DNA of 64,000 bases from Macrostomum lignano (GCA_002269645.1 NIVC01001234.1:124001-188000); one strand, 5' to 3'; shown: positions 4,461 through 53,382, counted from the first letter of the stretch. A program made the numbers and translations. Notes: generated by a model from the sequence alone, not told the origin.

Positions 4461-4464
4461 CTCC

Positions 4465-13115: not shown

Positions 13116-14207
13116 ATGCAGCTGGTTGCTTTCACTTGGAGGATTCTCTCCCTGACACTGATAGTCGATGGCAGCTACGGGACCAACATCACATTCGGTA
13201 AGCTTAGTGTTTCGAGCTCCGCTGCAGCTTGTAAGAAATTCGAGTAGAAAATGCAAAAACACATTGGTCTCAAATGCACTTAATTTCTCCGCGATTCAAT
13301 AGCTGGTACAGCTGGGTGCCAGCATTAGCTGGGGTAATTGAGGGTGTGCGTGGCGACCCCCAGTTCCTGGACTGAACAGCCGTACGCAGCCTTCAGATGC
13401 GCCGCGCAATAGCTGCAGTTGAGCTGCCGGCTCTCCATCTGCCCATTGGGATCAGGTGTAATCGATTTTTATATTTTCATTGACATTAAATTTAGCTCAT
13501 AATTGCTGGTTCTTGAAATAAATTTCACTCATTCATCTTCGTAACAGACGCTCTCGAGCTAGATTTGCTATGTTTCAGCTTGTCTGTCTACAGATTGCAG
13601 ACTGGCTGATTCTATCCCGTAGACACAATGTAGGAATTGGTTTAAGATCCTTTACACACCGAACCAGTTGGAATCAGTGGAGATGTTTCTGCAGCGGGAC
13701 AATAGTTACGGCGCGTTCGACCAGAGAAAGGGTTGGAGCGGCACTGTGGCATCATCAACCACCTGGTGGCTACTGGAGAGCGAGATCGGCTATTTGAGAA
13801 GTGAGTTTAAACCGAGTCTGGTAGCATTAATTCACAGTTTTCCAAAAAATGCATGCCATTTCAGGTACTTCAACCCTCCCAAGAGCGAGCTGCCTAACTG
13901 CACCGATAAGCCTTTTCCTTACGCTCTCAACAACTGGATACCCCAAGAACCGAATATTTTCAACACTCGCCACGGTGCTCTTACCCTCAGCAACACTCTG
14001 GGGATCGCCGTCATCAACTTGGCTGGCTGTCTGCTCACTCTGCTGCTGGCATTGCTGGAGAAGGCCTGCATCAACCTCAGGCCGCGTTTGAATCAGTTAA
14101 GAGGCAACGCGTTAAAGGACTGGCGACGATACAGGGCTGGGACTGGTGAAGCTGTGCAAACAGCTGCCAAAAATCAGACAGAAGAGAAGATGGAGTCATA
14201 CGTCTAA
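13116..14207 (+). pseudogene. psiC: internally deleted copy of iGluR-like gene C (exon 1, fused exon 8/9 remnant, exon 10)
   Basis: Exon 1 (13116-13197, MQLVAFTWRILSLTLIVDGSYGTNITF) matches C. Exons 2-7 are absent. At 13743-13749 the sequence jumps from the C 26286 equivalent to C 27161 (~874-bp deletion removing M1-M3). The last exon is nearly identical to C. Confidence 0.88.
13314..13490 (+). mobile_element. 5'-truncated CORE-SINE copy 2 (3' half)
   Basis: 'tgggtgccagcattagctggggtaattgagggtgtg...cagccttcagatgcgccgcgcaatagctg' matches 36600-36750. Confidence 0.85.
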
Positions 14208-14949
14208 CGCTTGAATTTTCACTTCTTCCATTATGAAGTTCAATGATTAATAAATCTGTAAATATTTGATTCACAGTTTATTCTTTTATACGAAAAACGA
14301 CAAGAAAAGATGGTTACTTATTAATCATGTGACTCATTGATTAAGCTGCTGAGGATGTCATGATCCCAGCTGGCTCAATTCAACTCAGATAATTTATTCG
14401 TTTAGTTGGACAATCCGACAATAATACTTTACCGAGGCTTTATCATTGACCCATTCTATTGTGAAAAGCTTTCTTAAGTTCCGAATCTTTCGCGAGCTCC
14501 AACTTACGCACAAGATTTAAGGATCGTCTCAGAGTTCTTTAGTGCGTTCGGTGAAACTTTCGCCATGGCTTACAACTATGATCTAGTAAACTCGGTCAGC
14601 CAATCCAGTTAGTCCTCATCCCGTAAAGGTTTCGCTCCACTGTCCCAAATGAAGTAACACGGAATGCGAACTTACTGTACTGTCATTTGGCTCGCGTTGC
14701 CCAAGGAAGTGCACAATTGGGACGTTTCTGATGCTAATTTTTGTATCAATAAAGCGTTTTTAAATAGACAGTAACCGCGCATATTTCTGAATGATGGCAG
14801 ATTTACGACGGAACTTAAGAAGACGCTTTGACTTACAAAAGATTCACCGAACGAAAATTTACGCCCACGGCAAAAAAACCATACGATCACTTCACCAAAA
14901 AATGTACGCCACAGTCTAATAACGCATATACTAATACTTACGCAGGCGC

Positions 14950-15760
14950 ACACGCACACGCACAGTGTGTACAGAGATATTGATTTTTTGGTCTGCAGGG
15001 TTTTGTTGTGCGTGCTGCGTCAGTAGGGTTTCCCCACCCCGGCCTTTTTCTCTCTCTCTCTCTCTCTTTCTCTTTGTGCCTCCGCCTCTCGCGCTGGGTT
15101 GGGCCGGTCGGTCGGGCTGGGGTTTGTGGGCTTAAGCCTCACCCTAGTCTGGCCGGCGGCCAGCTCAGGGCCGGTCTTGTGCGCGGGCCGGATCAGTCGC
15201 CCCACCCTTCCCGGCGGCTGGTGATTGGCTGGCCGGTTGGGTGAGGTGTACTGGCTGGGTCTGTGGGCTTGCCCCTCCCCCCTTTTTGTGCTATTTATAC
15301 GTGCGCCCCGCCCCACCCCGTCCCGGGCCCTCCCCCTAACCTCGCTGGCGGCTGTGTAGAAGAGTCCAAATAAACGCGATCGCGGTACGCTGAGGCATTC
15401 ACTGCGTTGTTGAATCTGCTCGAACCAAGTGTGAGTCTTCTTTTTTCTCTGGGGTGCCGCGCTGGGACTCGAACCTTTCTGGGACCGGCAGGTGAACCTT
15501 CGCCAGCCAAGTCATTCCGTGAACTCTCGCAGCACATCTAGGGCCGGTCTGGTGAACTTTCGTCGGCCGGGCCGTGGTGAACTCTCGCCGCGTTAGGGGC
15601 AATAAGCGGGACCTGGGTGTCTCCCAGCAAGGTAGCCCAGCCAACCTAGCCGGATTACAGCCGGGCAACCCCAGGGGGGCACAACAGTTGCATATGTATA
15701 CAGGACGGATTGGGGAATTGAACCTACGAACTTTGGCAAAAAAATCAGGTGCGCAACCGC
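14950..15760. other. GC-rich unclassified segment absent from the second duplicate copy; possible LTR-like or non-autonomous element remnant
   Basis: No counterpart at 28980-29160. Contains TATAAATA plus a GC box (- strand, 15293-15315), AATAAA (15369), a tRNA-3'-end-like string at 15450-15475 and four GTGAACYYTCGY motifs. Confidence 0.35.
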
Positions 15761-16663
15761 TTCGCTACTAATTCGCGGTAGTGATGCTGATTAATAAATA
15801 TTGATCGAATGGTTTGGCAAGTCTGGCGTTCAGCCAGTCAGGATCGAGTATCAGTTTGAAAATTAATCCGCATCAATGCTGAGCTGTCATTTAAGCCCAA
15901 AACAGCACTTGCTCAATAATCATACGTTTAGTATCCACCCAATCAAATAGGTCGATATCCATCCAATGCTTGAGATGACATCTATGCAAATCTGCGCTCT
16001 ATGCAAATTTCTAAGCAGAATAAACATGGGCGTGTATGCAAAGACTGAATGAAAAATTACCCTGTTTAAAAGGGGAAACCATAAGCCAGGCTCGGCCTTG
16101 GGTCCTTGGGTCTGGGGTTGGATGCGCCGCCAACTGGGCGGGAGTGGGTGTCTGTGGGGGGGGCATTTTTAGCCCCTGCGACCACCTCGCTCTGTCCCGC
16201 TTCGCTGGCTTGCGTGCGTTTTTTCTGCTTTTAGTCACCCCCTTACTTGCAGTCTCTGCAATTTCTATTTTCTTTTCACTTTCGTTTATATTTTACTTTT
16301 CAAAATCGCTTACATTAGCAAATATACTGGTGTTTCGTATGTTGCCCATACAGGGCGTTAGGATGCTTTTCGTGCTCTGCAAGTGTTGTCTTCTGCTCTC
16401 TCCCTCAGGCCGATCCGTCAATGTAAATTTAACTTTCTACTCTTTGCCTCGAGCGCGCTCGTTTGTTTAGAGCGCTTTCAAGCTCACAACTCATTGCCAA
16501 GCAAGTTGCCAAACTTTGAGATCATTGGCGAAGCGGGTCGTGATGCCTTCAAAGATATCTAAGGGTATTCGGAAATCTAGGGCATGTTTACATATACGAG
16601 TATATGTAAGGCGATACGAAACTTGAAACTCACTAAAATTGAAGCTTCCCAGACAGCGCAACT

Positions 16664-19600
16664 ATGCGACATCTTACTGTTTTGCAGCTGGGCTTTCTCA
16701 TTCTGATTGCAGGCTGTAGCGGAACGCAGGCTCAGAGCAACAACATCACACTGGGTTCGTTCAATTTTGTCTACTGAGAACTCGCTTTTGTCCAATTCTA
16801 TTTTCATTTGCAGACATGCAGATTTTGTGCTTCTAATGATTTCCTTTCAGCCCTATTGTGGAATGAAGAGGGCACAGCCGCACTGGCGAAGGACTTATTC
16901 GAAAAGAAGTTCCGACCGGCAATTCTCGAGGCCTGCCCGTCTGCCCCCGGCATCAATCAAACTTCCGTTGAGTTTGTGGAGATCATTCACAACAAGCTTA
17001 TGGATATCCCGTCTGCTATGACCAGTAAGAAGCATTTATTGCTTTTATTAATCTCTAAAATTTCTAAGGCTATAATAGAAAACATCTACGAACCCATGAT
17101 GTTACTCGGTTAGAATGCGTTGAGATATGAGATGATGATAGTGCGTACCTTCGTCAGTTTACCTGTCAGGTAAAAAAAATTTAAGAAGGCGACGGTAACT
17201 GCCGAATTAATTTAAATATGAGCGACGTCGAACCTCATCGATGCAAGTTCGATACAATGTTAATCGATGGACTCAATTAATTCGAGTAGGCATAAATTTA
17301 AACTTAGATAAAAAATTATTCTCCAAACTCAGACTTTGCCAGCCTAAGCAACTGCTTGTTCATCGGTGCCCACACTGAAGTATCGATGGTGCCGCTGTTT
17401 GCTCAGGCAAACTTGTCGACCGGCCTGACCCCGGGCTCTGTTGCTGCCCGCCGCTATCCCCGCATGCGGCTGCACAAGGTGGCACCGATCCCAGTATCGC
17501 TGGTCTCGGACGGAGTGTTGCGATCGCTTGTAATGTCTCTTGGCGCCAGCGAAGCAAAGCAAAGCCGCCTCAGCATCATTCTTGGCACCGGCTACGAAGC
17601 ATTTCATGTTGAAATTTTTGCTACAAAGTTTCCAGGCTCAGTGCAGCTCTACCGGCTTAAGCCGGGTGCAGAATACGACCTTATTACAAGGCTCCAATTT
17701 AAAACGACCGAAACCTTTCTGCTCGCATGCAAACCAGAAGAAGCCGAGGTTTTCCTTTCTGTGGCCTTCATAAATCGGCTTCTGCAACCAACTTATCGTT
17801 GGTTTCTGTTCAACATGGTGAGGCTAGATACTTTGTCTAGAAACAGTTTTCATATGTAAGGTACTGTATTTTTGAGTAGGAAAAAATAGTAGGGAAAATG
17901 GAAGACGAGTAATACCCGTAGTGCATTTCTATGATAGGAACTAAATAGACAGCTTAAATCTGTTTGAAAAAACTATATTACTCGTACATTACGCATTTTG
18001 TACGCATATTAGATTGACCTTGTATTTGTAGCTCCTGGTAGAGAGAAACAACTTCGGCGGCTACGTGATTGTGTCCAAGAATATCACATCAATGGAGTTC
18101 GGCCCAATATCCACTGCTATCAAAAACGGCCTAACTACGACGCGATCAGTTTACCTGTTTGATCTCTTGACTGTTTGGTCAGTTTACTTAAAAAACATTC
18201 TTTGTAACGAGGTGAGAGGTCACATTCGAGTTGTGCGAAATTTTATTAAGCTTTTTATGTCATTCAAAGCTTTAAAGTAATGGGATCATTAATAAATAGT
18301 TGTCATTAAATAAATTCACTCAAAGAAACACATTCGCAATGCAGATTGACTGAAGAGATGCATGAAGCTGTAAATATAGGCTTTTTTCTATTGTGCTTCA
18401 ATAGCATTGTTATTCATCACGAATAGTTTCTTCACTTACTTTAGGCATCCGAAGTGAACAGAACTGTTGAAGGCCTGACCGGTTCTTTTAGCTTGGGCCC
18501 GGACGGCACGGTAACCAGGAAATTCTGGCGGATGCACTTTTACAAAGGACTCGGCGATCAGCGTGAACGGGTGAGGCCTCCATTGTTGCAGTGTTTTCTA
18601 ATCGTGTCAAACTTGTTGCGATTTTGTTTTTCTACGAGATCCTCTTTGAAATTGTACCCCAGCTCGGATATCGTGCTGGGATTTCTGACGCTTATCAATT
18701 TCAAAATGAATTTCGAAAAACATATCACTCTCCCTAAGATCGGCAACTGGTCCAGTTCTGGAGACTTCTTCTTCGTCCCGGCAAAGCCGAGAATACCGAC
18801 TGATGAGGTGTTGAAGCAAGAGCTCAACTTGAACGTGTTCCGAGTAGTTACTGTACTGGTGGGTTTTCCAGAAACAGTTAACTCTTCCTTCAACAACTAG
18901 TTGAAGACGCTGCATAATTTCTCATCTAACAAAACTACTTCTTCATTTCAGTCACCTCCCTTTGTGCAGTTCAGAAAGGGCTACGAGAATCGGACTGACG
19001 TACCGCTCTACAACCGCCTAGAAGGGTTTGCTGTGGACATGTGCAAGAAGATACTGATGAACACGTCGGTAAGTTTAAACTTAGACTTATCTGTGAACAG
19101 TTTAAACTTAGACTTATCTGGAAACTCTACTTTACCGTTTTTGTGTAAAGGGTTTTAAACAGATTTTTTAGCGGCCGAAATATTTTAGTACATAAGTTGC
19201 ACTGCTTTGAAGCAACACTAGACTACTGCATTTAGCTCGTAGATGTAAATAGGCCGGTTGTCACTATTCTAATCACAGATGTTCCTCACTTCTTGAAATA
19301 AAAAAACATCAGATAATTATGTTGAAGAGAGAAAATAGCAAAAAACCGTCAAAGATTCAAAGACGATAGGAGATGCGTCAGCTAGCTAATCAACTTGCAT
19401 AATCTGCAATAATCGCTTTATATTCGTGAGTAGTTCTTGCTGGTAAGAAACAACTGACCCATTTCCCCGTTTTCCATAGCTAAACTCCGTTGAATTCTTT
19501 CTACAACCTGATGGTATCTTCGGCTCCTACGATCCAGTCAAAGGATGGAGTGGCATGGTAGCCACTCTCATGCTAAATGATGCCGACATGGCCTGCGCTT

Positions 19601-21168
19601 CAATGTCCGACACGGAGCTGCGCCGTGGCGTTGTCAAATTTACGCAGCCCATCTTATTCAACCAACTGTCAATCCTGTACTCGAAGCCAGAGGTCAATCC
19701 AGTTGAGCTACTATTTGAGTTTCTCTCTCCGCTACACCTGTACACCTGGCTGGCCTTGCTCGGCTCCGGCTTCGCGTCGGGGCTGGTGCTGGCGGTGCTG
19801 CATCGAATTAGCAGGAACGAACAACGGCTCAGCTTGTACGAAGCCATCTACGTCGCATTGGGCACGATGATCCAGGGCGTGAAGACAACGACACCGGATC
19901 GTCCGTCTGCAAAGCTGGTGAGAAAAAAACTGTAGAAAATAAAGTGCACCATTTCTAACAAGCGCCAATGCTGTAGGCGGCACGCACTCCTACACACACT
20001 CAAAAAGGATTTACAGCGGCCCAGACTTTTCAATTTTCAGACATGTAGCTCGCACACTGTCTGTGCTTTGGGGGGTGGTCCTCATGGGTATGAATCGCAC
20101 GGAACATTTGCAATTTTCGCGAAAAGCCGTAAATGAATGTGGCCAAACATGGAATCCAACCAGGGTTCGTAGCGCGAGGGTCAGGGGCCGTACCGCTGAG
20201 CTTCTCTGCCTCCGAACAGTAGTTAATATTAGAGTAAATTTCTTTCTCGCATTCGATTTTGGCAGGTGACAGTGGTTTTCTGGTTGTTTGTGTTCCTCTT
20301 CTTGATTATCTATGTGTCCAACTATGCAGTCAAGCGGACCCTGAAGCACATCCAAACGGAGATCAGGGGGCTGGAAAGCTTGCAAATACAGGAGGCGTAT
20401 GAATACTGTACGCTGTACGACTCTGTGTACTTGGGCTTCATGAAGAGCTCAATTGATCCGCTGGTGTCAGCAGCCTACCAGTACATCGCCGACAACCCGG
20501 AGCGCACTCAGCCGCGGAACATCAGCCAGGCACTCAGCCTCGTCAATACTGGCGAATTCGCCTTCCTCTATAGCAACGTTTTGAATGAGTACTACGCTAA
20601 GATGGGTTGTGGCCTTAAAGTAGTGGGCAGCTTCGGACAAGAAACGATGAATTTGGGTCTACCAAGCAGTATAGAATATGATGATTTGATCAATAAGATC
20701 ATTGACCGACTTATCAGCAGTGGAGAGCGAGACCAGCTCTACAAAAAGTGAGTCGAATTCGCCTTTATTGAAGACGGAGACAGCTCAGGATAAAATCAGT
20801 ACATAAAATCAGAGTTACCTTTTTATAAATTCCTTGCTTGCAGGTACGCAAATCCGCCCGAAAGCGATCTGCCTGACTGCACGAACAAGACTCTACCGTA
20901 CGCCATTCGCGATTGGATTCCAAAAGAGTCTGAAAACGTTGGCACCCGACGAAGCGCTGTGAACCTCAACCACACACTCGGAATTACGATTATTAATTTG
21001 GTCGGCTGTCTGCTGACTCTACTGTTGGCTGCCCTGGAGTTGGCCTTTCAAACCTACAGGCAGCGACTGCGCAGGCTTCGGGATGACATGTTGAAGGACC
21101 TGAGCCTCCGCATGGAGTCTGCCAATGCAGCCGCAGCTGGCGATGATCTGATGGAGTCAAACGTTTAA
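16664..21168 (+). CDS. Divergent ionotropic glutamate receptor / IR-like gene B, 10 exons (16664-16754, 16851-17024, 17333-17817, 18032-18211, 18445-18570, 18739-18858, 18952-19068, 19480-19917, 20266-20747, 20844-21168)
   Basis: Signal peptide MRHLTVLQLGFLILIAGCSGTQA; ATD-length N-terminus; S1 PPFV...EGFAVD...WSGMVATL...ADMA...FTQP; M1; pore loop ALGTMIQG; M3 FWLF...IYVSNYAVKR; S2 with two cysteines; M4. Splice phases join in frame. Confidence 0.88.
20060..20225 (-). mobile_element. Degenerate tRNA-like (SINE head) insertion in intron 8 of B; also in B' at ~32770-32930
   Basis: The - strand reads 'gctcagcggta...cctggttggattcc' (A/B-box-like). Intron 8 is ~350 bp in B and B' versus ~90 bp in C and D. 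Confidence 0.45.
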
Positions 21169-22182
21169 TCCGTGTTGTATCGGACTGCAGTTTGATACGT
21201 CAGTTGAAAACAATTATCAAACTGTGTCAGCGGTGGAGGGAAAACAAAAGTTGATTGATTGAAAAAACTTTTCATCATATTTAATTTCAATCAATCAACT
21301 CTCTTTAACAACTTTTGAATATTTACTCAGTCTATAATCAGCGTCCTTCAAAAGAATAACACATAGGACGTATCTGTACATGGGTACAATGAGATGTAAG
21401 CATCGTTAACTAAACTGGGAGTCAATCCCTACATATATAATTCCGGCAACAAGATGTCCAGTCGTGAGGCTCGAGTTAATTTTTCCAAAGGCGCAGCACG
21501 GAGAGCACGAGGAGCTTAGCTGATCTCAGTTCATCCAACAATATTCAGAGACCTACGGAGTGTCAGAACGTGGCAGGTCAGCAGACACTCAACTGTGGTT
21601 GTCTCTGAACTGTTTGATCTAGCCATAAATTGCGCTATTCTTAGCACCTTCATCTGATTGGACTTTTCAGAGATGACCTGCAATTTAACCAGCTCGTATT
21701 CGTATTCTTTCATTCCTCCACCCCGGGAACAGCGGCAGGCACAAATATTTTCTATGCCTCATTTTTCGGCTAAAAAGTTAATTTCGAACGATACCAATCA
21801 GCAAAGTACGGTAAATCAGCATTTAGAATTCCAACTTCTGCTCCTGAAAAACATTATACCATTACGAGCGTATACGAGCTACTTTGTTCCAATTTTTTTA
21901 AATTATGAAATATTCAATGTAATACGGTCAGGTATTTTTCAGAAAACAAGATTTGAGAAAAGTACTGGCTGACAAAAGCGTTTTGTCTCGGTTTTGAAAA
22001 TATGAGCTCTGAGTCGCAGTCGAATTGTGTATGGACATTAGTACTAAATTCTCTCTTGTGTGCACAGGAATTGCTCTGACAAGCACTAAAATGAAGGACT
22101 GAACTTAAGCCTCAGAGAGATCAACATTGCAACAGGCTCCATTTATTTAGCTACACTGAAATTTCTTTGTCCCGCTTGAATT

Positions 22183-22258
22183 ATGCTGTCTCTAATCATC
22201 GTGCTGCTGCTTCTCTGCAGCAATGGAATTCGCGTCAGGGAAGAAAACTTCACTTTAG
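22183..22258 (+). other. Orphan signal-peptide exon homologous to exon 1 of gene D (MLSLIIVLLLLCSNGIRVREENFTL|gtaag)
   Basis: About 80% match to 35243-35318. ATG and the phase-1 GT donor are intact. Homology to D intron 1 ends near 22500. Confidence 0.8.
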
Positions 22259-23154
22259 GTAAGACGAATTAAAGAATCAATATGCGCTCGTAGTTTACGA
22301 ACAGATTAATTATCTGAAGAAAATAAACTGCTAATCGATTTTCCCTTCAGGCATCAGTTTCAGTTGCAATAATAAAACTTAAACTTAAACTAAAAAACTT
22401 AAAAAGCAAAAACAAAAAATGATAATCCAATTTTTTTTTCTTTAGAAGCACTGCTTGAAGAGGGGGGGATTTATTGAGCGTACTTGCCTCAAGCTGGCCC
22501 GGTGTACACCCAGCGGTGAAGAGTTTAAGAGTGGTTATCAGTCATTCAAAAACTCCCACTTCTAGACAATGGGGAACAAGTTCCCTAGGTATTATGCAAA
22601 ATCAAATAACTCTTACTGGAGCGGCTCCTCTTGTAACTTGTTAGCAGGCTGGCCTTGTGTGGTAGAGACGACTGGCTTCAGTGAATTGTCTCCGGGGGTC
22701 CCTAACTTTATCTGTGGGTCGACAAAAATCGACAGCGAATCAGAAGTCTTTACAGTGTCCTCGAGCTCGGAATTAACAATAGAACGTGCGCCCTTAATGA
22801 GCAATTGAATTCTCTGAGTTTCTGCAATACTCAGCCAGAACCTTGTGCAGGCCGTGGGAGTGTGAGATACATACACAAGTATCTATACAGTGCCACCCTT
22901 CTGATATAAAACTGCTTGATAAATCCGTCACTCAGCTTGGATTCAAACCCCGTCTTAAATGCATGCCTGTAATTTCAGTCGCAGCGGGGGTGAACAGCTT
23001 CTGGAGCGTATGTCAGGCGTATTCAGCGTCTTAGCCGCTGCCCAGCCTGCAGAACACCGCAGAGGTAAGTATATTAGACTCACAGGCTCGACAGTACCGT
23101 GCATGGCTCATTCATTTAACTCACCACTTATTTTGAGTCTCGTCAATTCTTCAA

Positions 23155-42175: not shown

Positions 42176-45100
42176 TCATAATATGCTTTCGTCCACCTGC
42201 ATCAGCACCAGGGTGCTTCGCCTACGGTCGGCGGAGCTGCCCCGGACGCTGTCCTCCCGGTCAACTAGATTCCGGCCCCAGCGGTTGCGGCAGCGGTCGA
42301 AGCCGTGCTCCAGCCCGGCCACTAGTAGCACCAGCGCGCAGCTGAACAGATTCAGTAGCGACAGCCCAAGAGTGTCGCGTAGCGTCAGAGCGCCAGGCCG
42401 AGGCGCCAGGCTTGGCGGCTCCTCTGGCGCCAGGTGGGACAGGAAGGCGCCGATTCTGCTGCTGCTGCTGGCGTCGCTGCAAAGCGGGCGCTCGCCGGCG
42501 GGCACCTCAAAGTATCTGCGGGAGCCCCGATGGTGGTCCCTTGCAATGAGGCGTAGCGGCTCGTAAAATTTTGAGCTGGGTAACCTAGATTAACCCTGTT
42601 GCTATGCCAAATTACCCTGCCCTAAGCTTACCTAGCTACAATACCCCAATAGCTTTAAAACAATCAAAACATGTATGCTTGCTTCATCAGGCAAGAATTT
42701 TTGTAAATAAGTAGCTTTGGTCATATTTGTTATTTAATTTATTGATAAATACTTGGGTAGTAGCAAAAAACCTAGGAAGGATATTTGCATGAAAGACTCT
42801 TCATATCATGTCAAAGGAGAAGCCTCATTGCCATGCCGACAGAGTTTGAAAACTTGGGTCCTTGGCCTTTCGCTGATTTACTCAGTGGTACGAGCTAAAC
42901 ACGTCCAATTCTCGTGCCACGACCTCTGGTTCGATTCTGTGTGTACATAGAATGTACATGTCTGACGATTAGAAAGTCAGTACCGCTGTACACCCTGTGT
43001 GAGCGTGTGCGTGAGTGCGTGCCTGCGTACAGCATTGGCGAGCTTGTCTGTGCTCAGGAATGAGCAGAATTGCCTCAGAGCTGGTTGTGGGACGATGTCG
43101 CTGAAGGCGTTGCGTCATGCTACTCACAGCACTTCTGCAAATGTTTTATTATCATCTGTGGACCCAGCGAGGCTATATATACTCCTACATAGGGGTCAAT
43201 TGCCACTACTGTTCTAGTTCTCAAGACAAGATGCAGGTGACTCTCTGGCCTATAGACGGCTGCTGATACCATCCGCTGTGCTTTGCTGACTACGAGCCTA
43301 TAATCGCAGAGTGCAGGGGTCTGTGTGGGAACTCAGATTTCGGGATATTTTACTCTTACACTTTTTACTTTTTATACTTTTAAATCAGTTTAACCAGATA
43401 CCTAGATATTTTTCAATTGAACTACCCAGTTACTGCCTAATTAAATATACTCAGCAACATCGAAAATTCGCCATCACAAAAGATTCCGTCTATGATCACC
43501 ACTTTTGAGAGGGCAGGTAAAGTCTCTCAATCTTTGCGAGTGACTTAGCTAACTCAGCTACGCCACGGCAGACTTGAGTTGAGGAATGAAGCGGGGGGAG
43601 CGGTGTGCGAGAGTTGGACGGATTTCAATTTTGCTGAGTATACTCGTTAGATTAACATCTAAATTAATAGCACACCAAATTAGGTAGGTTAAATTACCCA
43701 TGCAGTTTAACGGAGTTGATGAAAAATGTAAAACATGCGCAAAACTGACTTTTCTTAGTCATGCAGGTCAGGGGCTGCGTTAAGAGTTCTAGTATAAGCA
43801 TGCGACTCTGCGGCTAGACTATGCTTCAAAGTTGACTAACATTTTTAGTTAGAAAATTTTTTTGTGAAAGCAAGCGCACCTACGCTCCAACTCGTCTAGC
43901 CAGTCGTCAGTTCTGTTGTCCATGGCAGCCGCCAGCTCCTCGTTTATCAGCGGCAACAGCCGAGATCCAGTCGGCAGCGCCAGCCCCAGCTCGATTGGGA
44001 TGCCATCGAACACAACAAGCCGGGCGTCGCAGGTCAGCTGGCTCCAGTAGGCGTTCCGCTTGGCGTCGTAGACCAGAGCAAAGTCGCCGGTCTCCATGGC
44101 GGCGCGGCCGATCTGGGCGTTCGAGAACAGGCCGCCGCGGTGCTGCATTCGCTCATAGACCATGCGCAACTGAGGGAATGGCGACTCTTTGAAATAGGCG
44201 GAATAGCTGGAATTGGCCAGAGTGCCGAACCTGTGGGTTGTCTGGTCCAGCAGGCTCCTCAGCGTTCCCCGATGGGCACCTGCACTCTGTTCAGGCATCG
44301 CTGGCCGGCTAAGTTGGCCGCGAAGGCTACAAGAAGCAGCAGCGCTGTCAGGCGGAAGGCCGACACAGCAAACCGGCCGGAGGGTCGCTGCGGCTGCCGG
44401 CATCTGCCCTAATAAGGTTTAATTCGGCATTGAATAAATGTGACTTAAAGCCAGCTTTTGCATTCGAGTTAGAGGAATTCTATAGCTTAAGTTTTTAGTT
44501 TTTAGTACCATTCATTTAAGTAACACGTTAGTAACACGTAGCAATGTTTGTCACATGATATTTAAATCCAGTGTTGTGGCTGCTAGCTAAATGACTTAAG
44601 TCGACTCGGGAGTCGAGGAATGAACCAAATTGGCTCTGTCGGACCCTTCAAAGAAGGGACAGAGGCATGGATTCAATACCAAGAGCGCATTGAACAGTTT
44701 TTTTGTTGCCAACGACATTGCAGATGAGAAAAAGAGAGCAGTGTTGCTCAGTATGTGTGGGAAACAAACATATCAGTTGCTCTGCAGCCTTCAGTTGGAA
44801 CGTCTTATGCTGACATCTGCAAAGTACTGAAGGAACACTTCGACCCAACGCCGCCAGAAATCGTTCTGCGCCATCGCTTTTTCACTCGAAACCGTCAGTC
44901 TGGTGAATCCATTGCCGTCAGCTTGGCAAAGGTTGCAATCTCACCAACCTGAACGGAATGCTGAGGGACACGCTCGTGCTGGGCATCAACGATGACGGAA
45001 TCCAGCGGAAACTCCTTGCTGAAAAGGAACTGACGCTAGCAAAGGCACCATCAACAGCACAGGCCCTTGCTACGGCCGCCGAGGGCACTCAACTTGTGAT

Positions 45101-48100
45101 GAAGGGCACCGAGCCAGAGTCCGTTCACGTCGTTCAGCAGTCGGCAACTGCCAGACGCTGTTTCCGGTGTCTCTCACAGCGGAATCTGGTATCCAAGTGT
45201 CCCTTCTTGAGCAAGAAATGCTTCAACTGCTCCAAGCAGGGGCACACGGCAGCTGCATGCAAGTCCCAGGCATCCAGTGGTCGACGCAAGAACCAGGCGG
45301 CGGTGCGCGAAGTCGAGTCGGAGATGGAGGAGACAGGTCCTGCCGCTGCTCGTGGTAGATGGCTCCGGTTCAGATTTGATTGGGCGAGACTGGCTGGCCG
45401 ATCTGCCCCTGGACTGGCGCGGGATCGAGCAGATGCAGTCGCATCAGAGCGGTGAGCATCCTATGATCCGCGACCTGCTGAAGCAGTATTCCGGTGTGTT
45501 CGAGTCCGGACTCGGCCAGTATACAGGGCGGCCAGTGTAGCTGCGACTGAATGACGGGGCCCGGCCTCGCTTTCTAAAGGCCCGCAACGTGCATTTCGCG
45601 CTGAAGGCCAAGGTTGAGGCACAGCTAGACAAAGAGATTGAGCAAGGTGTGCTAAAGCCCGTGAGTAGCTCTGACTAAGCATCGCTTATTGTTCCGGTGC
45701 TCAAGCCCGATGGATCCGTTCGCATCTGTGCCGACTTCAAGCAGACGGTGAATCTCGACGTGGAACCGGAAAAGTATCCGCTGCCTCGGATTGACGAGCG
45801 ATTCGCTAAGCTGGCCGGAGGGCAGAAGTTTACGAAGCTCGACCTCTCTCTCACAGGCGTATTTGCAGATGCCTCTGGACGAGGTCTCTCAACAGATCTG
45901 CACCATCAACACGTCCAAAGGGCAGCTGCGCTACACCCGGCTTCCGTTTGGCGTGGCGCCTGCAGTCGGAATTTTTCAGCGGCTCATGGATAGCCTGCTG
46001 CAGGCCATTCCGCATGTCACCTGTTTCATCGATGATCTCATCATCACCGGGAGCGACGACGAGAGCCCCTGCGTTCACTAGAGTTGGTTCTACAGCGCCT
46101 GCAGCAGAGTGGCCTGAAGTGCGGACTGAACAAGTGCAGCTTCATGCAAGAGAGTGTGAGCTATCTGGGACATCGAATCGATGCTGCCAGCTTTCACCCG
46201 CTGTCAGAGAACTTGACTTACTTGACTTAGCTGCAGGGGGCTCCGGAAACAGCGAGTTTCCAGTTTCGAGTGTTTGTGCGTCCGGAAATAGCGAGGAGGC
46301 GTTGCCGCCCATTTCGCTGTCAGAGAAGGTGCGGGCCATCATGGATGCGCAAGCGCCCAAGGACGAGACTCAGCTCCGCAGCTTCCTGAGGTTGGTCAAC
46401 TACTATGGCAAATTCCTGCCGAACCTGTCCACCGAGCTGGCCCCACTGCATCGTCTACTGAACCGGGATGCTGCCTTCCGTAAGTGCAAAGAGCTGTTCA
46501 GCAGGGTGCCAGTGCTCGCACATTTCGATGAGCGGCAGCCGCTAGTGCTGGAGTGCGACGCTTCTCCATACGGCTTAAGCGCTGTCATCAGTCATCGAAT
46601 CAACGGTATCGACAGACCGATCGCCTTTGCCTCGCGCTCCTGATTTCATCCTTCTGCTTCATTCAGAGCATGCATTTATTAATATTAATAACATAGAGCA
46701 TAGAGCATTGGTCTTAATAATTAGCATAGAGCATAGAAGATTAATCTTATTAATAGTATAGAGCATGCACATTCACAACATCCAGCAAACCTGGAACAGC
46801 ATCGCCAGAGCCGAATAGGCAGTGTAGACAGCATGGAATCGGCTTCGGTCCTTGTGACGCCGGTACAGACCAGTCAAGGTCAGCGCGAGGAGAACGGCGC
46901 TCCCGAGACCTGCCAGCCAGACGTACAGGTGCATCGAAGTGGCAAACTGAAACATGGACTCGGTGGGGTCGCTGCGCACCTCGCGGAAAAGCACAGACAT
47001 GTTTGTCTGGATGTACGCGCGGCTTAACGTCGCCGGCCAGCTCGCCATCTGGTGCGAAAGCGACGTCGACGGCGGCGTCATCGCTGAACAGGCAATGTCG
47101 GCGCGACCGTCGGCGAGTGCGCCGGCAACTCGCACCCATGCGTCATTGTCGATTGCAGTGGCGTTGGGAAGCAGCTCCAAGGACAAGTTGGTAATCTGCC
47201 AGTTTTATTGGAATTTTTCGGGCTGAATGTAATCTAATTAGAGAACCTATTACGTAAATAAGACCTCTAAAATATTGGAAATCCTTTGACAAGTTTCAGT
47301 TGACAGGTGTTAGATAGCAGGTAGGTCAGTGGAAAGGACATCATTAGTGGGCATCAATAGACAGGGGCGTCAATGAACTGCTATTAGAGGAAATTCACCC
47401 CAAATAGGAACGCTCACCCCAAGGTTCTGCCTGAGCAGCCGGATGCACAACTCGAAGGAAAATCCTTCCAGGCGATCCTCCAACGCCTGACCGGTCTTGT
47501 CTTCCATGCCCGTCTTGAATCGGACGTACGGGTTGTCCTGTAGTGTTTTGGTTAGATGTAGAAAAAAAATAATTTATTACTCCGATAAGTAGTGCAATGA
47601 GGAGATGCAGTCTCTCCGCTCTCTCCTTTTCACTTCTGTGTTGACTGTTTGCACTACCGGTAACGAATTGTCTATGGCCATGTTGAAGTTCATGTTATTT
47701 CAGTGTACATCTCGAGCTGCGCCATCAGCTTCTCTCCATCCTATCCTCGCTTCTCCCCATCCTCTCCTCGCTTCTCTCCATCCTCTCCTTCTCGCTTCTT
47801 TCCACCCTGTCCTTCTCGCTGTTCTCCATCCTCTCCTCGCTTCTCTCCGACCTCTCCTCGCTTCTCTCCACCCTCTAATCCTCGCCTCTCTGCCCTCTCC
47901 TCTCCTTTTGCCCCCCTGCCCTTCTAAGCCAGACTTGCCAGCACGAGAAGCACTTTCAGCGGCGCCTGTCTGTAGTGCTGCAGGACGGCCTCTCGCGAAG
48001 TGTCGGTCGGCCTCATCGGACTCAGGCTGAACCGACCGTCTGTTGAAAACTCGCCCACCTGTACGTGCGGCAAAAGAGAATTCATGACAGAACAAAGCAA

Positions 48101-51100
48101 TATATCAAGCAGTTGTATGTGCTTCTTTTACTACTGTTAGTACACTTTGAGCTGCTAAAGAGCGCCTAGTTGCAGCTGACTCACCAGCTCCGGTCGCAGC
48201 GGCAAGTTCCGGTAGATGCCGAGGCGCCAGTTGTCACGAACGACTGCACCGTCGGGGAGCAGGCGAAATGTTCCCGTCAGCCCGGTGACATTTTTCTCCT
48301 GCAGAGTCTGTGGAAGGCATTAATAGAGCCTTTAAATGCACATACTGCTAATAGTAGTCAGGCTACCTTGCCTTAATCACTTTAGTCACAATAAATGAGC
48401 CAATGCACATGCGTGCCTGAATTGCTGTGCTTTCTTGGAAAGACGTACTCGCAGACCTCGCTTTTTCTCTTCCCATCATTCTCGCCTCTCTCTCTCCTTC
48501 TCGCCTTTCCCTCCTTCCCGCCTCTCTCCCTTCTCGCCTTTCCCTCCTTCTCGCCTCGCTCCCTCCTTCTCGCCTCTCTCTCTCCTTCTCGCCTCTCCCT
48601 CCTCGCCTCTCTCCCTCCTTCTCGCCTCTCCCTTCTTCTCGCCTCTCTCTCTCTCCTCGCCTCTCCCTCCTCGCCTCTCTCCCTCCTTCTTGAGGTGCCG
48701 GGCGTGTTTTGATGTACTGCACTGCACCTGACTCACCTGAGTCCAATTATGAGTAACTCTAACTAGCCAGCCAGCCTAACTAACCAAACCGGCCTACTCC
48801 GGTGTACGCTGCTCTGCGTACTTTTTCTCTCTCTCCCCCTTGACATGATAATATTCAGTAGTGATCGATTCTGAGTTTTAAGCCCACTTACTTGTTGTCT
48901 TTTAAGCCTATATATTGGTCTCGCCACCTACCACCTCGTATCTCACAATCATTGCAATAATTCGCTCATCTCAAATACACAACTTCGTACTTGACTCAAA
49001 CCAAGCCCACGGGCGGCCTTGTCATCGTTTACTGGGCGCGACTTGACACTTCTCGCCTCTCCCTTCTTCTCGCCTCTCTCTCTCTCCTTCTCGCCTCTCT
49101 CTCTCTTCTCGCCTCTCTCCCTTCTTCTCGCCTCTCTCCCTCCTTTTCGCCTCTCCCTTCTTCTCGCCTCTCTCCCTTCTTCTCGCCTCTCTCTCTCCTT
49201 CTCGCCTCTCCCTCCTTCTCGCCTCTCTCTCTCTTCTCGCCTCTCTCCCTCATTCTCGCCTCTCTCCCTCCTTCTCGCCTCTCTCCCTCCTTCTCGCCTC
49301 TCCCTCCTTCTCGTCTCTCCCTTCTTCTCGCCTCTCTCCCTCCTTCTCGCCTCTCTCTCTCTCTCCTTCTCGCCTCTCTCTCTCCTTCTCGCCTCTCTCC
49401 CTCCTTCTCGCCTCTCCCTTCTTCTCGCCTCTCTCTCTCTCCTTCTCGCCTCTCCCTTCTTCTCGCCTCTCTCCCTTCTTCTCGCCTCTCTCTCTCTTCT
49501 TCTCGCCTCTCTCTCTCCTTCTTGCCTCTCTCCCTCCTTCTCGCCTCTCTCCCTTCTTCTCGCCTCTCTCTCTTCTTCTCGCCTCTCTCCCTTCTTCTCG
49601 CCTCTCTCCCTTCTTCTCGCCTCTCTCCCTTCTTCTCGCCCCTCTCCCCTCTCCTTCCGTCCATTCTCCAGACCAGCCAATTCTAATCTTAATTCCATTC
49701 CCAGACTGTCGGACTCAGCTGAATTGATAATAAATGGTCTTACGCCATTGCCGCAGGCGAGCTGCCTGACGAACTCGGTCCACGCGCTGAGCAGGTCGTA
49801 CAGCATCACGTGCTCCGTAGTTGGCAATTTGCGGCCCAATTCCTCAGTAAAAGGTCCGAACTCCATAGCAGTAACGTTGTCGGCCTCGTTGGCAAACACC
49901 AAAGACTCGGTGTCATTGCGCCGCTCGCTGCCCACCGCTAAGCCCTTTGAGGTTCGTGTGTGGTTCAACGAGACTTCTGTACAGTCTTGCAAGTTTTTCT
50001 GCACTCCGAATGCAAATTTTATTGAAATAGCAAGTCATGCCTCCGCTGACAGAACTTGCAACAATTGAGGGTTGTGAAAGAGCCTGGGTTGGGGTTGTCC
50101 GCACCAAGTTTTGTCTATGGTAAAACCCCCACTATGCTAAAGTTTGTGCGGACTTCAGCGGCATTTTGCTGTTTTTCGATCATTCTGTGAATGAACCTTC
50201 ACAAAACGCGCACTTTCTTAATTTTATTGTAGGAACTTGAGAGGCCGACCATTTTGTCTATCATTACGATAGTGTTAAAGCTTGAAGTTTCTTATCTCGA
50301 AAAAGCCTGCCTTCAACTCCAAGTAAGGATATTTTGAAACGCTAAAGATGGTTTATTCTGGCCGAGCATCAAATCCGTCACGATCACCAGGTGATTTTAT
50401 AAGCGACAGTCCCAGCTCAGTCTGCATGCCCCCGGTTGTCCCCCAAAGCCAACCTGAATCGCTCGCTGCAATTTGATTCTTCAGAATAGCAGAAAGCGAA
50501 GACACTTTATTTACGCACAAATTTACCAACAGATAAAATCTCTCCTCCATTTGCCTGCGCGTTTTTTGCGATTTTTTTGTGCTTTTCTACGCCAGCGAGT
50601 CCGTCAATCCAGTCTCCCAGCTTCATCGTAAACAGGCTGACAGGGGATGACAGCCGATTTCTCGGCGCTGATTAAAGCCTCGATTTCCTCTTTTTTTAAG
50701 TAAAAGAAGACAAACAAAATTGTTTCTGCTTTTTTCTCTCCTGAACAGCCAGCCGGGCTCCTCAAATCTGATGACACTTTGCCCTAACAAATCTCTCCAA
50801 GACAGATGAGGTCTGACAGGTGGATGCTGGAGAGTCATTTTCGCCTCCTTGGGGCTGCAGTGGCAAGAAAAACATTTGTCCGGCTTTCTGTCGGCAACTG
50901 CGCGGCCGCATGAAGCCAGCTGCGCTCCTTGTGGCTCGGCTGCTTTTTGGGAACTATTGACTGATTTAAATGTAATTTTGGAATCGGAGATTAGGAACTC
51001 ACCAACTCCTCATTCAGAGTATCAGTCAGCTCATTGCAGCACCCTGATCACTGACAGTCCTTCTTCATCAGTCATCAGTGAATTCACTCATCCACTTGAT

Positions 51101-53382
51101 TCATCCATCACTCCATTCATATATCACTATATTCACTCATCGCTGCATTTACTCATCATCACTGCATTCACTTATCACTACATTCACTCTTCACAGCATC
51201 CATTCATCACTGCGTTCACTCATCATTACATTCACTCATTCCTACATTCACTCATCCCTACATTCACTCACCATTGCATTCACTCGTCACTGCATTCACT
51301 CATCACTGCTTTCACTCATCACTACATTCACTCATCCTTACATTCACTCACCATTGCATTCACTCATTACCGCATCCCTCATCACTGCGTTCACTCATCA
51401 CTACATTCACTCATCACTACATTCACTCATCACTACATTCACTCATCACTACATTCACTCATCACTACATTCACTCATCACTACACTCACTCATCACTAC
51501 ATTCACTCATCACTACATTCACTCATCACTACATTCACTCATCACTACATTCACTCATCACTACATTCACTCATCACTACATTCACTCATCACTACATTT
51601 ACTCATCACTACATTCACTCATCACTACATTCACTCATCACTACATTCACTCATCAAGCCGGTCACTTTGCATTAGCGGTGGCAGCAGAGCTGATCCTAC
51701 CGTGTCAAACAGCAGCCATCGCTGCTGGGTTTCCCGCAGTCTGGTGCCAGCAGCAGCCTGCAGCAGCCGGTTCAGCAGCGGCCGCCCGGCCACCACCAGC
51801 AGCAGCCGGTCTGGCCTGAAGGGGTGCAGCAGGCGGTCCACAATCTCGGCGGCGTTGCTTCCGTCAACGTCCAGTCGGTGACAGTCGACGCCGCCTCCGC
51901 TGCCGGCGCCGCCGCCGTTGGGAAAGATCGGCGCCAGATCGCGCACCCGGTACGGCGCGCCGACAATCAGCGACGCCGAGGTGACGAGCTGCGTGGCCGC
52001 GGCTGCCAGCGCCAGTCCGGGCGCCAGCTGCAGCATCGGCGGCGACGGCGCAGCCACTGACGAGTGCCAGCGGAGCGAAGGCGGCGCCGCCGATCGCAGC
52101 ATCCGACTCCAGGCACTGCGGCCCATATTGTCGGTGTTGTCCTCTGCATCGACAGCGAAGAGGAAGTTCGAACTCGACAGCCGGTGGGCGTCTGGAAAGT
52201 TTTTGTTGTTTGGAGAAGGTCTGTGAGTTCCTTGGTGACTTTTTGCTCTGAGTTCCTAGCATTTATAGTGTCAAGGACGCTTAAGTCCCAAAAGTATTGG
52301 ACTGACAAGGACATTGGACTGACAAGGACATTGGACTGACAAGGACATTGGACTGTCAAGGACATTGGACTGACAAGGACATTGGACTGACAAGGACATT
52401 GGACTGACAAGGACATTGGACTGACAAGGACATTGGACTGAAAAGGACATTGGACTGACAAGGACATTGGACTGACAAGGACATTGGACTGACAAGGACA
52501 TTGGACTGACAAGGACATTGGACTGACAAGGACATTGGACTGACAAGGACATTGGACTGACAAGGACATTGGACTGACAAGGACATTGGACTGACAAGGA
52601 CATTGGACTGACAAGGACATTGGACTGACAAGGACATTGGACTGACAAGGACATTGGACTGACAAGGACATTGGACTGACAAGGACATTGGACTGACAGG
52701 GACATTGGACTGACAAGGACATTGGACTGACAAGGACATTGGACTGACAAGGACATTGGACTGACAAGGACATTGGACTGACAAGGACATTGGACTGACA
52801 AGGACATTGGACTGACAAGGACATTGGACTGACAGGGACATTGGACTGACAAGGACATTAGACTGACAAGGACGTTGGATTGGCAGGATTTTTTTGAAGA
52901 GAAAGTAGAATCAGGAAAATTGAAGCCCAGCTCGGATCAGAGGCAGTAGTTGATGGTCTTACAGGTGCAAAAAGTATTGATTCACACTAACTCAATTTCA
53001 GAGAATTTGAACTCAAAGTTTAGAATCTCAGGGAGACTCTCACAGGACTCCAGCAGCTCCAGGGGCGGCCACTTTGGCAGCGGGAATTCTTCGAATGTCA
53101 GAGCCGCATGCGCGGCGGCGGGACACGAGCTGCGCAGTTTGGACTCGAACAGGTCTTTGTACAGGCCGCTCAGGTCCGCTGCCACCCCGGCCCGGGTCCA
53201 GAACACGGCTGCAATCATGGCGGTGGTGTTGTACAGGAAGAGAATCACTCCAGTTTAAAATAGCAGTCAATTTCTGGATAGCAGCGCTGCTCACCGAACG
53301 AATAGTTGGCCGCGCCCTGTGATGAGGCTGCCAAGGCAATGATGACGGCAATGCTGCCTAAGAGAGATCGCGACTTTGCCAT
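42176..53382 (-). CDS. Distant iGluR/IR-like paralog E, 10 exons (53382-53295, 53208-53044, 52191-51701, ~49998-49744, 48307-48185, 48058-47939, 47537-47418, 47195-46791, 44408-43880, 42515-42176); apparent frameshift at 44267-44270
   Basis: Signal peptide [23 protein letters not shown]. Exon-by-exon homology to B/C/D: [31 protein letters not shown] (120-nt exon, as in B), [21 protein letters not shown]|[28 protein letters not shown]. Confidence 0.82.
44620..46643 (+). mobile_element. Decayed Ty3/Gypsy LTR retrotransposon internal region (gag, zinc knuckle, RT, start of RNase H) in intron 8 of gene E
   Basis: Gag [17 protein letters not shown] and [14 protein letters not shown]; [32 protein letters not shown]; RNase [18 protein letters not shown]. 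It has stops and frameshifts, and no protease, integrase or recognisable LTRs. Confidence 0.9.
46212..46314 (-). mobile_element. ~100-bp insertion nested in the Gypsy RT, flanked by a 13-bp direct repeat
   Basis: CGCTGTCAGAGAA at 46199-46211 and 46315-46327. Removing the insert restores [10 protein letters not shown]. One end has a (TAAGTCAAG)2 tail on the - strand. Confidence 0.7.
47720..49660. repeat. Three blocks of a C/T-rich 'cttctcgcctctc' simple repeat (47720-47930, 48470-48690, 49047-49660) in introns 6 and 4 of gene E
   Basis: Directly visible; it explains the Arg/Glu- and Leu/Ser/Pro-rich ORFs. Confidence 0.92.
51095..51655. repeat. 16-bp minisatellite (cactacattcactcat) with a degenerate 5' end, E intron 3
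   Basis: Period 16 (51421 and 51437). Confidence 0.93.
52291..52880. repeat. 17-bp minisatellite (ggactgacaaggacatt) x~34, E intron 2
   Basis: Near-perfect head-to-tail copies. Confidence 0.95.

Follow-up and report, generated by a model that had tools for sequence, protein, structure and literature searches.

Arthropods, and probably molluscs, have built large ionotropic chemosensory repertoires from lineage-specific, pocket-modified relatives of the ionotropic glutamate receptors (iGluRs). These protostome ionotropic receptors (IRs) are divergent iGluR relatives that have lost at least one of the R/T/E agonist contacts and have expanded in tandem, with pseudogenes among the copies (PMC2924276). 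IR8a and IR25a keep the amino-terminal domain (ATD), and IR21a, IR40a, IR64a and IR93a carry N-termini of ~400 aa with very low ATD similarity (PMC2924276). The AKDF class of iGluRs holds numerous uncharacterised genes, and some delta-family iGluRs are gated by GABA (PMC10861852). Here we analyse a window of 64,000 nucleotides from the flatworm Macrostomum lignano (GCA_002269645.1, NIVC01001234.1:124001-188000; "the window" is this entire stretch, and positions are counted from its first letter). Between 13116 (the ATG of psiC) and 53382 (the ATG of E) it holds six paralogous iGluR-type loci in ~40 kb.

We put a probability of about 55% on the explanation that the loci form a tandem birth-and-death cluster of iGluR-superfamily channel genes belonging to a long-branch, flatworm-restricted, AKDF-like clade with a non-classical ligand pocket, as judged from the sequences. 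Two copies (C and D) are clearly intact, B is probably intact and three (psiC, B' and E) are damaged. An earlier inspection of the DNA by itself (the sequence-only reading) had proposed six related loci here, on these strands and with a common 10-exon plan; our spliced models confirmed the coordinates. They are as follows.

13116-14207, plus strand: psiC, a truncated pseudogene copy of C, a deletion remnant.
16339-21168, plus strand: B; exons 2-10 (16851-21168) are an intact open reading frame (ORF) with all introns GT-AG, at 16851-17024, 17333-17817, 18032-18211, 18445-18570, 18739-18858, 18952-19068, 19480-19917, 20266-20747 and 20844-21168.
23155-27619, plus strand: C, 10 exons, intact ORF of 854 aa (848 aa with an exon 7 GC donor at 25973), at 23155-23236, 23892-24065, 24249-24733, 25152-25331, 25418-25543, 25651-25770, 25857-25991 (or -25973), 26206-26643, 26731-27212 and 27277-27619.
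29646-33879, plus strand: B', a recent copy of B exons 2-10, by exon-by-exon alignment to B.
35243-40559, plus strand: D, 10 exons, intact ORF of 842 aa, at 35243-35318, 36242-36415, 36834-37318, 37749-37928, 38017-38142, 38282-38401, 38500-38616, 39019-39456, 39548-40029 and 40229-40559.
53382-42176, minus strand: E, a very divergent paralogue of 10 exons with good splice sites, from tblastn and junction search, at 53382-53295, 53208-53044, 52191-51701, 49923-49744, 48307-48185, 48058-47939, 47537-47418, 47195-46791, 44408-43880 and 42515-42176.

The models were obtained by tblastn with two database proteins, followed by an exhaustive search for frame-keeping GT/GC-AG junctions, among which those giving the highest similarity to the guide proteins were chosen. 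Exons 2-9 of B, C and D measure 174, 485, 180, 126, 120, 117, 438 and 482 nt with identical phases; the exception is exon 7 of C, which has a GCAAGT donor at the conserved position. This intron 7 of C (25973/25974) and intron 6 of E (47939/47938) are probable GC-AG introns where the paralogues have GT. Every splice site of C and D is intact (GT/GC-AG introns). In D, exon 8 codes for S1 (DTELRR), M1 and the pore loop, and exon 9 for M3 (IIYVTHYAAKRT) and S2 (GSVY..., FAFIYNSAMN).

Exon 1 of C, D, E and psiC follows a single plan: a signal peptide, an N-x-S/T sequon, F or L, and a phase-1 G|GT donor. The sequon had been put forward as common to all six loci; in B, the 'NLT' falls in read-through sequence, and P0003 and P0009, two M. 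lignano paralogues from the databases, have N-F-A. As these two proteins do without it, we rejected the sequon as a hallmark of the family.

B deserves separate comment. The candidate for its exon 1 (ATG at 16339 or 16363) resembles a signal peptide when translated and runs through ...NVNLTF into TACTCT, without a donor where the paralogues have theirs; the homeologous contig described below reads identically here. An alternative intron 1 joins a donor at 16422 (AAT|GTAAAT) to a strong acceptor at 16814 (TTTGCAG|) in phase 0, which keeps the frame. The B protein is 96% identical to the transcript-derived model P0001 (BOX15_Mlig034115g2), the start of which lies inside exon 2. We considered that B is a 5'-truncated pseudogene. 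This was not established, since the in-frame alternative intron exists and the homeologous copy is under constraint.

B, C and D score well above the Pfam cut-offs for both Lig_chan-Glu_bd (PF10613; 70.8-77.8 bits against 30, E-values ~1e-20 to 1e-22) and Lig_chan (PF00060; 42.5-52.7 bits against 30.8, E-values 1e-11 to 1e-14), the values for C being 9e-22 and 5e-14, and SBP_bac_3 is above threshold in all three. E falls under both gathering thresholds (Lig_chan 25.8 bits, Lig_chan-Glu_bd 17 bits). Among PDB sequences, phmmer found GluA2 with an E-value of 7e-36, with GluK3, GluA3/4 and GluD2 near (to 1e-33; GluD2 6lu9, 6e-33). Matches to GluN2A were weak (2.5e-8 and 1e-7) compared with 2e-33 for a kainate-like protein, so that the NMDA class is not the nearest. 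By these scores, the iGluR-superfamily identity of the cluster is far beyond chance.

The N-terminal region was harder to assign. Pfam ANF_receptor (PF01094) gave no match at an E-value of up to 1 on the N-terminal 380 aa, and the phmmer alignment to GluA2 begins within the last part of the ATD. Using hhalign, we compared the family N-terminal region (~377 residues) with a profile built from 82 canonical ATD sequences, the first row being human GRIK1, and obtained a match over residues 159-363 with a probability of 98.6% (E-value 1e-15). The AlphaFold2 model of the full-length paralogue P0003 (pLDDT 78.4) has an alternating beta-alpha N-terminal domain, a clamshell and M1, pore, M3 and M4 helices; in Foldseek it aligned over its entire length to GluA2 and GluK2 chains (E-value ~1e-42). 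For the first ~150 residues, the assignment as ATD comes from this model alone. The hhalign match, the model and its Foldseek alignment therefore indicate that the family retains a full-length, though very divergent, ATD in a predicted three-layer architecture of ATD, ligand-binding domain (LBD) and transmembrane domain (TMD). The predicted order in C, D and probably B is signal peptide, divergent LIVBP-type ATD, S1/S2 clamshell, M1, pore loop, M3, M4 and a short tail. Thus, the iGluR fold called in the sequence-only reading is borne out by Pfam, PDB-sequence matches and the P0003 model; of the Pfam domains it named, the two channel domains were found in B, C and D and ANF_receptor was not. 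The full-length N-terminal domain it described stands by hhalign and the P0003 fold, with nothing from Pfam. That reading also set this domain against insect IRs; the domain is kept, but the contrast is less sharp than it held, because IR8a and IR25a keep an ATD and other IRs have the ~400-aa N-termini mentioned above (PMC2924276).

To compare the ligand pocket with that of described receptors, we aligned the proteins pairwise to GluA2 with HMMER and together in a 125-sequence MAFFT alignment. The two agree. The residues are listed below in GluA2 numbering, with the state in 115 homologues outside the family.

R485: R in B, C and D, S in E (local insertion); R in 115/115.
T480: S in B, C and D, T in E; mostly T.
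Y450: F in B, Y in C and D, A in E; mostly Y.
S654: V in B, C and D, S in E; mostly S.
T655: Y in B, C, D and E; mostly T.
E705: S in B, N in C and D, D in E; D/E in 115/115.

The triad that binds amino-acid agonists (R485, T480 and E705) is thus incomplete in B, C and D and, through R485, in E. This agrees with the non-canonical pocket of the sequence-only reading, including its points that B, C and D retain the Arg, with Tyr at 655 and Ser or Asn at 705, and that E retains an Asp at 705 and has lost the Arg. What needed narrowing was the extent of the change: loss of the acidic 705 is limited to the B/C/D subclade, and P0003, P0008, P0009, P0163 and E keep D or E. Across the family, Y, T or L occurs at 655 and D, E, N or S at 705. 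All members have Gln at the Q/R site, and the two conserved cysteines of the LBD are present.

The gate is also altered. In the 115 other homologues, each position of the M3 motif SYTANLAAF is 94-99% conserved. B, C and D instead have (I/A)YV(T/S)(N/H)YA(A/V)KR, which departs from it at 6 of 9 positions in D and at 5 of 9 in B and C; the residues kept are Y, N (H in D), the first Ala and, in C and D, the second Ala (Val in B). NYAAxR thus stands where canonical receptors have NLAAFL, and the K-R adds two positive charges. The N-Y-A-x-x-R signature occurs in every M. lignano member and in 12 of the 13 cestode proteins examined; the cestode protein P0121 has NYA followed by Ile-Ile where the others have x-R.

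Taken together, the AMPA and kainate receptors (GluA2, GluK1-3) are the best sequence and fold matches, with a common ATD-LBD-TMD layout, R485, the LBD cysteines and the Q/R-site Gln. They differ from B, C and D by an identity of only ~18-26%, by an ATD that Pfam does not detect in the flatworm proteins, by the altered SYTANLAAF, and by N/S at 705, Y at 655 and V at 654. GluD1/2 are also AKDF subunits with non-glutamate pharmacology or no known gating, and GluD2 scores about as well as AMPA and kainate receptors. Delta receptors keep the acidic contact to the alpha-amine and the SYTANLAAF motif.

The proteins could still be synaptic neurotransmitter receptors with a remodelled pocket, opened by glutamate, glycine, GABA or D-serine. 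They retain R485, a Ser in place of T480 and an aromatic side chain at Y450, together with the ATD, the disulfide cysteines of the LBD and the Q/R-site Gln; other family members retain D/E at 705, and transmitter switching within AKDF is known from the GABA-gated delta-family iGluRs (PMC10861852). We consider this quite unlikely for B, C and D: the acid that is gone from them is present in all 115 other homologues, NMDA and kainate references included, S654-T655 has become V-Y, and the M3 gate motif is strongly altered.

The favoured explanation would have the following mechanism. The products most likely assemble into tetrameric cation channels like other iGluRs, probably as heteromers with other family members. 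The clamshell of B, C and D keeps the Arg that would anchor a carboxylate, and has lost the acid that would hold the alpha-amino group (E705 to N/S), with S654-T655 replaced by V-Y. Because this acid and the S654/T655 contacts are missing, classical gating of B, C and D by glutamate or another alpha-amino acid is unlikely. Their ligand may be some other small molecule, the simplest guess being a carboxylate without an alpha-amine. Alternatively, they may be modulatory partners that bind no agonist and act with paralogues that keep the acid, e.g. of the Mlig005297 type. Since NYAAxR replaces NLAAFL throughout the clade, gating would be altered as well. B, C and D would in this respect work like the tuning IRs of protostomes. 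Their physiological role may be synaptic or, as this analogy would suggest, sensory.

To place the proteins among known iGluRs, we used a profile to search 1.84 billion representative proteins and obtained 4325 homologues. Those above 400 bits were M. lignano proteins only, with six representatives at 50% clustering; the next was a scallop 'glutamate receptor 2-like' protein at 216 bits. In a separate search with the joined exons of B as query, BOX15_Mlig034115g2 matched at 96% and BOX15_Mlig005297g2 at 45%, and next came a mollusc kainate-like receptor (26% over half the query). Neighbour-joining trees were built on Kimura-corrected distances over 413-414 LBD+TMD columns and rooted on GluN2A. 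The M. lignano family, E included, was monophyletic (bootstraps 98/100 and 54/60), as were B+C+D (60/60) and M. lignano together with two cestode proteins (60/60). Within the family, the branching order was (Mlig005297,(C,(B,D))) and (Mlig022707, E). Human GRIK1/GRIK5 and the AMPA-like Octopus and Patiria GluR2-like proteins fall in clades separate from the flatworm one, although long-branch effects are possible, and the median distance of the flatworm clade to other sequences is 1.86 (typical value 0.97; ~2-fold). Nesting on short branches inside the AMPA/kainate group, which would have spoken against the sequence-only reading, was not seen; the clade sits on a long branch outside. The best-supported assignment from these sequences is a long-branch, flatworm-restricted clade of non-NMDA (AKDF-like) iGluRs. 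A lineage-specific family had been proposed; the clade was indeed found only in flatworms, but it extends beyond this cluster and species, to M. lignano paralogues elsewhere in the genome and to cestodes.

The other M. lignano members (Mlig034115, Mlig005297, Mlig015771, Mlig022707 and Mlig025413) have the same domain plan, the M3 signature Y-x-x-N-Y-A-A/V-x-R and Q at the Q/R site. They are labelled 'hypothetical protein' in GenBank and 'PBPe domain-containing protein' in UniProt. Mlig034115g2 corresponds to B itself, as its homeologue or allele (96% at the amino acid level); the others differ from B, C and D in keeping D/E at 705. On another contig (L002, NIVC01002135.1), Mlig005297 (10001-17574, plus strand) and Mlig022707 (19520-22087, minus strand) are convergent and lie beside a tetraspanin gene. 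As this pair mirrors D (plus) and E (minus), and as Mlig005297 groups with B/C/D in the tree and Mlig022707 with E, the arrangement suggests an old duplication of a two-gene unit.

The cestode relatives are annotated 'Glutamate receptor U1' or 'glutamate receptor ionotropic kainate' and come from Taenia, Hydatigera, Echinococcus, Mesocestoides and Anoplocephala (P0030, P0121 and P0216-P0226). With the M. lignano proteins they have in common an N-Y-A-(A/S)-Y-R M3 signature, the 'QG' end of the pore loop and the grouping at 60/60. They differ by an identity of only ~20%, and P0030 keeps R485 and a Glu at 705. A third database search, with the family profile, found several cestode genera with one or more copies; it revealed no planarian or trematode members, and its results were dominated by cestode relatives of its first sequence. 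Two of the cestode models are over-long: P0216 (Hydatigera, 1413 aa) and P0217 (Taenia asiatica, 1333 aa). P0216 carries the M3 signature twice and is therefore probably a fusion of two tandem genes; P0217, in which one copy was found, may be another. If so, tandem duplication has occurred in tapeworms too. The searched literature contained no functional study of cestode members of the clade.

These relationships bear on the proposal, made in the sequence-only reading, that the genes may code for chemo- or thermosensory receptors. Spelled out, these would be peripheral receptors, and flatworms would have their own counterpart of the protostome IR radiation, with expression in sensory neurons and tuning to cues from the environment. 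By analogy, several features would fit. The cluster has expanded in tandem with pseudogenes, as IRs have, and agonist-binding residues are lost (E705 in B, C and D, R485 in E); the pocket has diversified within the family at 655, 705 and R485; and IRs with long, barely recognisable N-termini exist (PMC2924276). In addition, B, C and D keep the carboxylate-anchoring Arg and have lost the acid that binds the alpha-amine. This combination resembles acid-sensing insect IRs. The flatworm clade differs from IRs in its retained ATD fold, and no sign of descent from the IR25a/IR8a lineage was seen, in trees built from non-IR references. We regard the proposal as rather unlikely. Outside the flatworms, the highest-scoring relatives bear AMPA- or kainate-like names and not those of IR25a or IR8a, and none of the 30 homologues looked up by name was an IR. 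The expansion is modest: the protein libraries gave about six clusters at 50% identity, to which E, matching none of these, is to be added. Arthropod IR repertoires are much larger than that of the flatworm clade. Moreover, the dN/dS values reported below (0.14-0.27) are those of ordinary purifying selection, with no sign of diversifying selection, and the gene IDs are unmentioned in the searched papers and supplement.

A related but distinct possibility is that Platyhelminthes have a channel class of their own, derived from iGluRs independently of arthropod and mollusc IRs in a convergent 'IR-like' radiation, with B, C and D as non-amino-acid receptors. The marks of such a class would be the re-engineered M3 gate (NYAAxR) and the kept, highly divergent ATD, and organic acids or other environmental or internal chemicals would be the cues for B, C and D. 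This is doubtful at present and we hold it as tentative; if true, it would be a convergent sensory radiation with orthologous targets in tapeworms.

To assess constraint on the coding regions, we calculated ratios of non-synonymous to synonymous change. Nei-Gojobori dN/dS was 0.21 for B-D, 0.14 for B-C and 0.14 for C-D, with saturated dS. B and its homeologous copy differ at 31 synonymous and 27 non-synonymous positions (pN/pS 0.27) and both keep the ORF. By these estimates, B, C and D have evolved under purifying selection. S1 was the best-conserved segment in all B/C/D pairs (74-82% identity). M1-M3 identity was 87% for B-D and 60-63% in the pairs with C, and the ATD was 62-65% identical; S2, ATD and tail are less conserved than S1.

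This pattern is relevant to the idea that the proteins are not ligand-gated channels at all but orphan or structural subunits, e.g. trans-synaptic organisers that, like delta receptors, work via the ATD, or partners that are silent but obligatory. A kept, moderately conserved ATD, a pocket without a universal agonist contact and a gate motif with two added charges would all be in line with such a role. Nevertheless, S1 and M1-M3 are among the best-conserved regions, as expected if ligand binding and the pore matter, and the Q/R-site Gln and pore-loop pattern are kept across the clade, which makes this idea very doubtful.

GenBank BOX15 gene models come from RNA-seq transcript assemblies (PMC5730564). 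Family members P0001, P0003, P0008, P0009 and P0163 have such models, and the B-type gene, Mlig005297, Mlig015771, Mlig022707 and Mlig025413 are therefore transcribed. A search of 5.8 billion protein clusters with D returned two B-type proteins only. The five Mlig IDs (Mlig034115 and the four just named) were not mentioned in a full-text literature search and did not occur in the supplements of PMC5816591. A search of the literature on flatworm IRs and iGluRs returned only a report on a single gene, 'S. mansoni IR' (PMC5080760), and general AKDF phylogenies. What is new here is thus three unannotated genes (C, D and E) and a flatworm clade; divergent IR-like genes in other protostomes were already known (PMC2924276).

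Several points weigh against a tandem cluster of functional, pocket-modified channel genes. None of the public protein sets searched contains C, D or E, and this holds for the GenBank annotation derived from RNA-seq too. As this annotation is transcript-driven, the three genes may be silent or very lowly expressed. B-type products may be without a signal peptide, given an exon 1 that has no conserved donor and the start of P0001 within exon 2. An Asn or Ser at 705 could still hydrogen-bond an amine, and the deduction of ligands from residues is indirect. The modelled protein was P0003, which is 46% identical to the window proteins, and its alignment held canonical iGluRs. The trees are neighbour-joining only, with long branches; they have no IR25a/IR8a, epsilon, lambda or phi references and no delta-labelled sequence. 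What we say of expression, localisation and ligand for the window genes is prediction.

Another alternative is a whole cluster without function, consisting of decaying pseudogenes or relics that annotation does not see. psiC is a deletion remnant, B' and E are frameshifted, B has no canonical exon 1 donor, and C, D and E are missing from the protein sets. This is highly improbable. C and D have complete ORFs over 10 exons with all splice sites intact and, with B, dN/dS of 0.14-0.21; both copies of B keep the ORF at a pN/pS of 0.27, and the B-type transcript model P0001 exists (PMC5730564). The single-base lesions of B' and E could also be, in part, errors of the PacBio assembly.

The cluster defines a flatworm-restricted clade (Macrostomum and cestodes) with an unusual gate, one subclade of which has lost an otherwise invariant amino-acid-binding residue. 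If they are functional channels, the proteins would be a natural experiment on change in the SYTANLAAF gate and in the residues of the agonist triad. They would also be candidate chemoreceptors in a model flatworm that regenerates and can be made transgenic and, via the cestode relatives, possible parasite-specific channel targets. The M. lignano gene set gains three unannotated genes (C, D and E) and corrected models. Demonstration of a non-amino-acid ligand or of sensory expression would make the cluster considerably more interesting.

The damaged copies record how the cluster arose. What is left of psiC is exon 1 (13116-13197), with the signal peptide, the NIT sequon and the G|GT donor, then ~83 nt from the start of exon 8 (ending at ~13750), ~52 nt from the end of exon 9, and all of intron 9 and exon 10. 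In blastn comparisons with C, 13018-13208 matched 23060-23247 at 91%, 13464-13750 matched 26001-26288 at 78%, and 13749-14407 matched 27161-27819 at 91%. The deletion took exons 2-7 and the entire M1-M3 channel core.

B' is probably a pseudogene. Its exon 3 has two 1-bp deletions (at ~30248 and ~30276; net frameshift -2), and its exon 1 region is degenerate, with no ATG and no ORF. The UniRef model P0002 contains the same shifted-frame peptide as B' ('PGLCCCPPLSRMRLHKV'). Identity between B and B' changes along their length: introns 2-3 are at 83-89% and the 5' part as a whole (exons 2-3 with introns 2-3) at ~84%, followed by ~98% from exon 4 on (96-100% from intron 4), the matched segments being 16430-17888 with 29275-30704 and 18020-21694 with 30722-34404. 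This mosaic points to events later than the duplication of the C-B unit, either gene conversion or duplication in two steps.

The coding sequence of E (2.56 kb) is damaged at one point only, in exon 9, where a GGGG run near 44268 carries a 1-bp frameshift; the bridged ORF is 853 aa long. With all splice sites intact, we rejected the view that E is an old pseudogene. Its intron 8 lies ~14 codons upstream of the position in B, C and D and contains the following element.

44700-46700, plus strand: degenerate Ty3/gypsy-type long terminal repeat retrotransposon fragment, in E intron 8 and antisense to E.

By Pfam, the fragment has a gag zinc knuckle (zf-CCHC), reverse transcriptase (RVT_1, 3e-9) and RNase H (RT_RNaseH_2, 3e-14), and it is frameshifted. 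That it disrupts E was rejected: it sits between exon 8 (which ends at 46791) and exon 9 (which starts at 44408), and so leaves the coding sequence uninterrupted. psiC, B' and possibly E are thus decaying copies; the genome was assembled from PacBio reads, and the lesions of B' and E could for this reason be partly assembly errors. Three damaged copies and a ~13-kb segmental duplication of the C-B pair make tandem duplication with birth-and-death clear, in agreement with the sequence-only reading.

A second copy of the locus is present in the assembly. The window is collinear over 5.6-24.7 kb, at 95-99% nucleotide identity, with contig NIVC01000941.1 (L001, GCA_002269645.1), the genomic locus of Mlig034115g2, and an upstream NAD-kinase gene is common to both. 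The window is therefore an allelic or homeologous copy of that region. The known redundancy of the M. lignano assembly (PMC5730564) fits two copies. They differ structurally by a ~4.3-kb insertion between B and C (14909-19265 of L001), which is absent from the window; conversely, 11816-13719 of the window, including psiC exon 1, has no counterpart in L001 (6166-6498). Two further features lie upstream of psiC.

8403-8948, minus strand: NAD kinase exon (Pfam NAD_kinase, E-value 2e-9).
11818-12303, minus strand: reverse-transcriptase fragment just upstream of psiC (RVT_1, 26.7 bits, under the cut-off).

By collinearity with L001, the NAD kinase gene spans roughly 7.2-10.7 kb of the window; a 377-aa NAD kinase is annotated at the same relative position in NIVC01000941.1, upstream of B.

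Repeats occur within and around the genes. A repeat of ~250-300 bp is present as two inverted copies (36460-36755 and 37457-37701; 82-88% identical) that lie in introns 2 and 3 of D, one on either side of exon 3, and a third copy lies in the NAD-kinase region (8125-8421); from its structure it may be an element like a miniature inverted-repeat transposable element. Introns 2-4 of E hold tandem arrays (49049-49648, 51082-51656 and 52296-52879) with units of 19 bp x32, 16 bp x36 and 17 bp x34 at 98% identity, which yield long spurious ORFs in six-frame translation (e.g. 'RREGRE...' repeats). Downstream of the cluster there is one further ORF, which may be an exon of an unrelated gene or spurious.

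60453-61406, plus strand: GC-rich, low-complexity ORF of 318 aa (Q, P and A runs) with no Pfam match.

The flanks of the cluster (810-5950, 54588-56736 and 63685-64000) are rich in minisatellites and microsatellites, the periods of these arrays ranging from 4 to 159 bp, which fits the repeat-rich genome of M. lignano.

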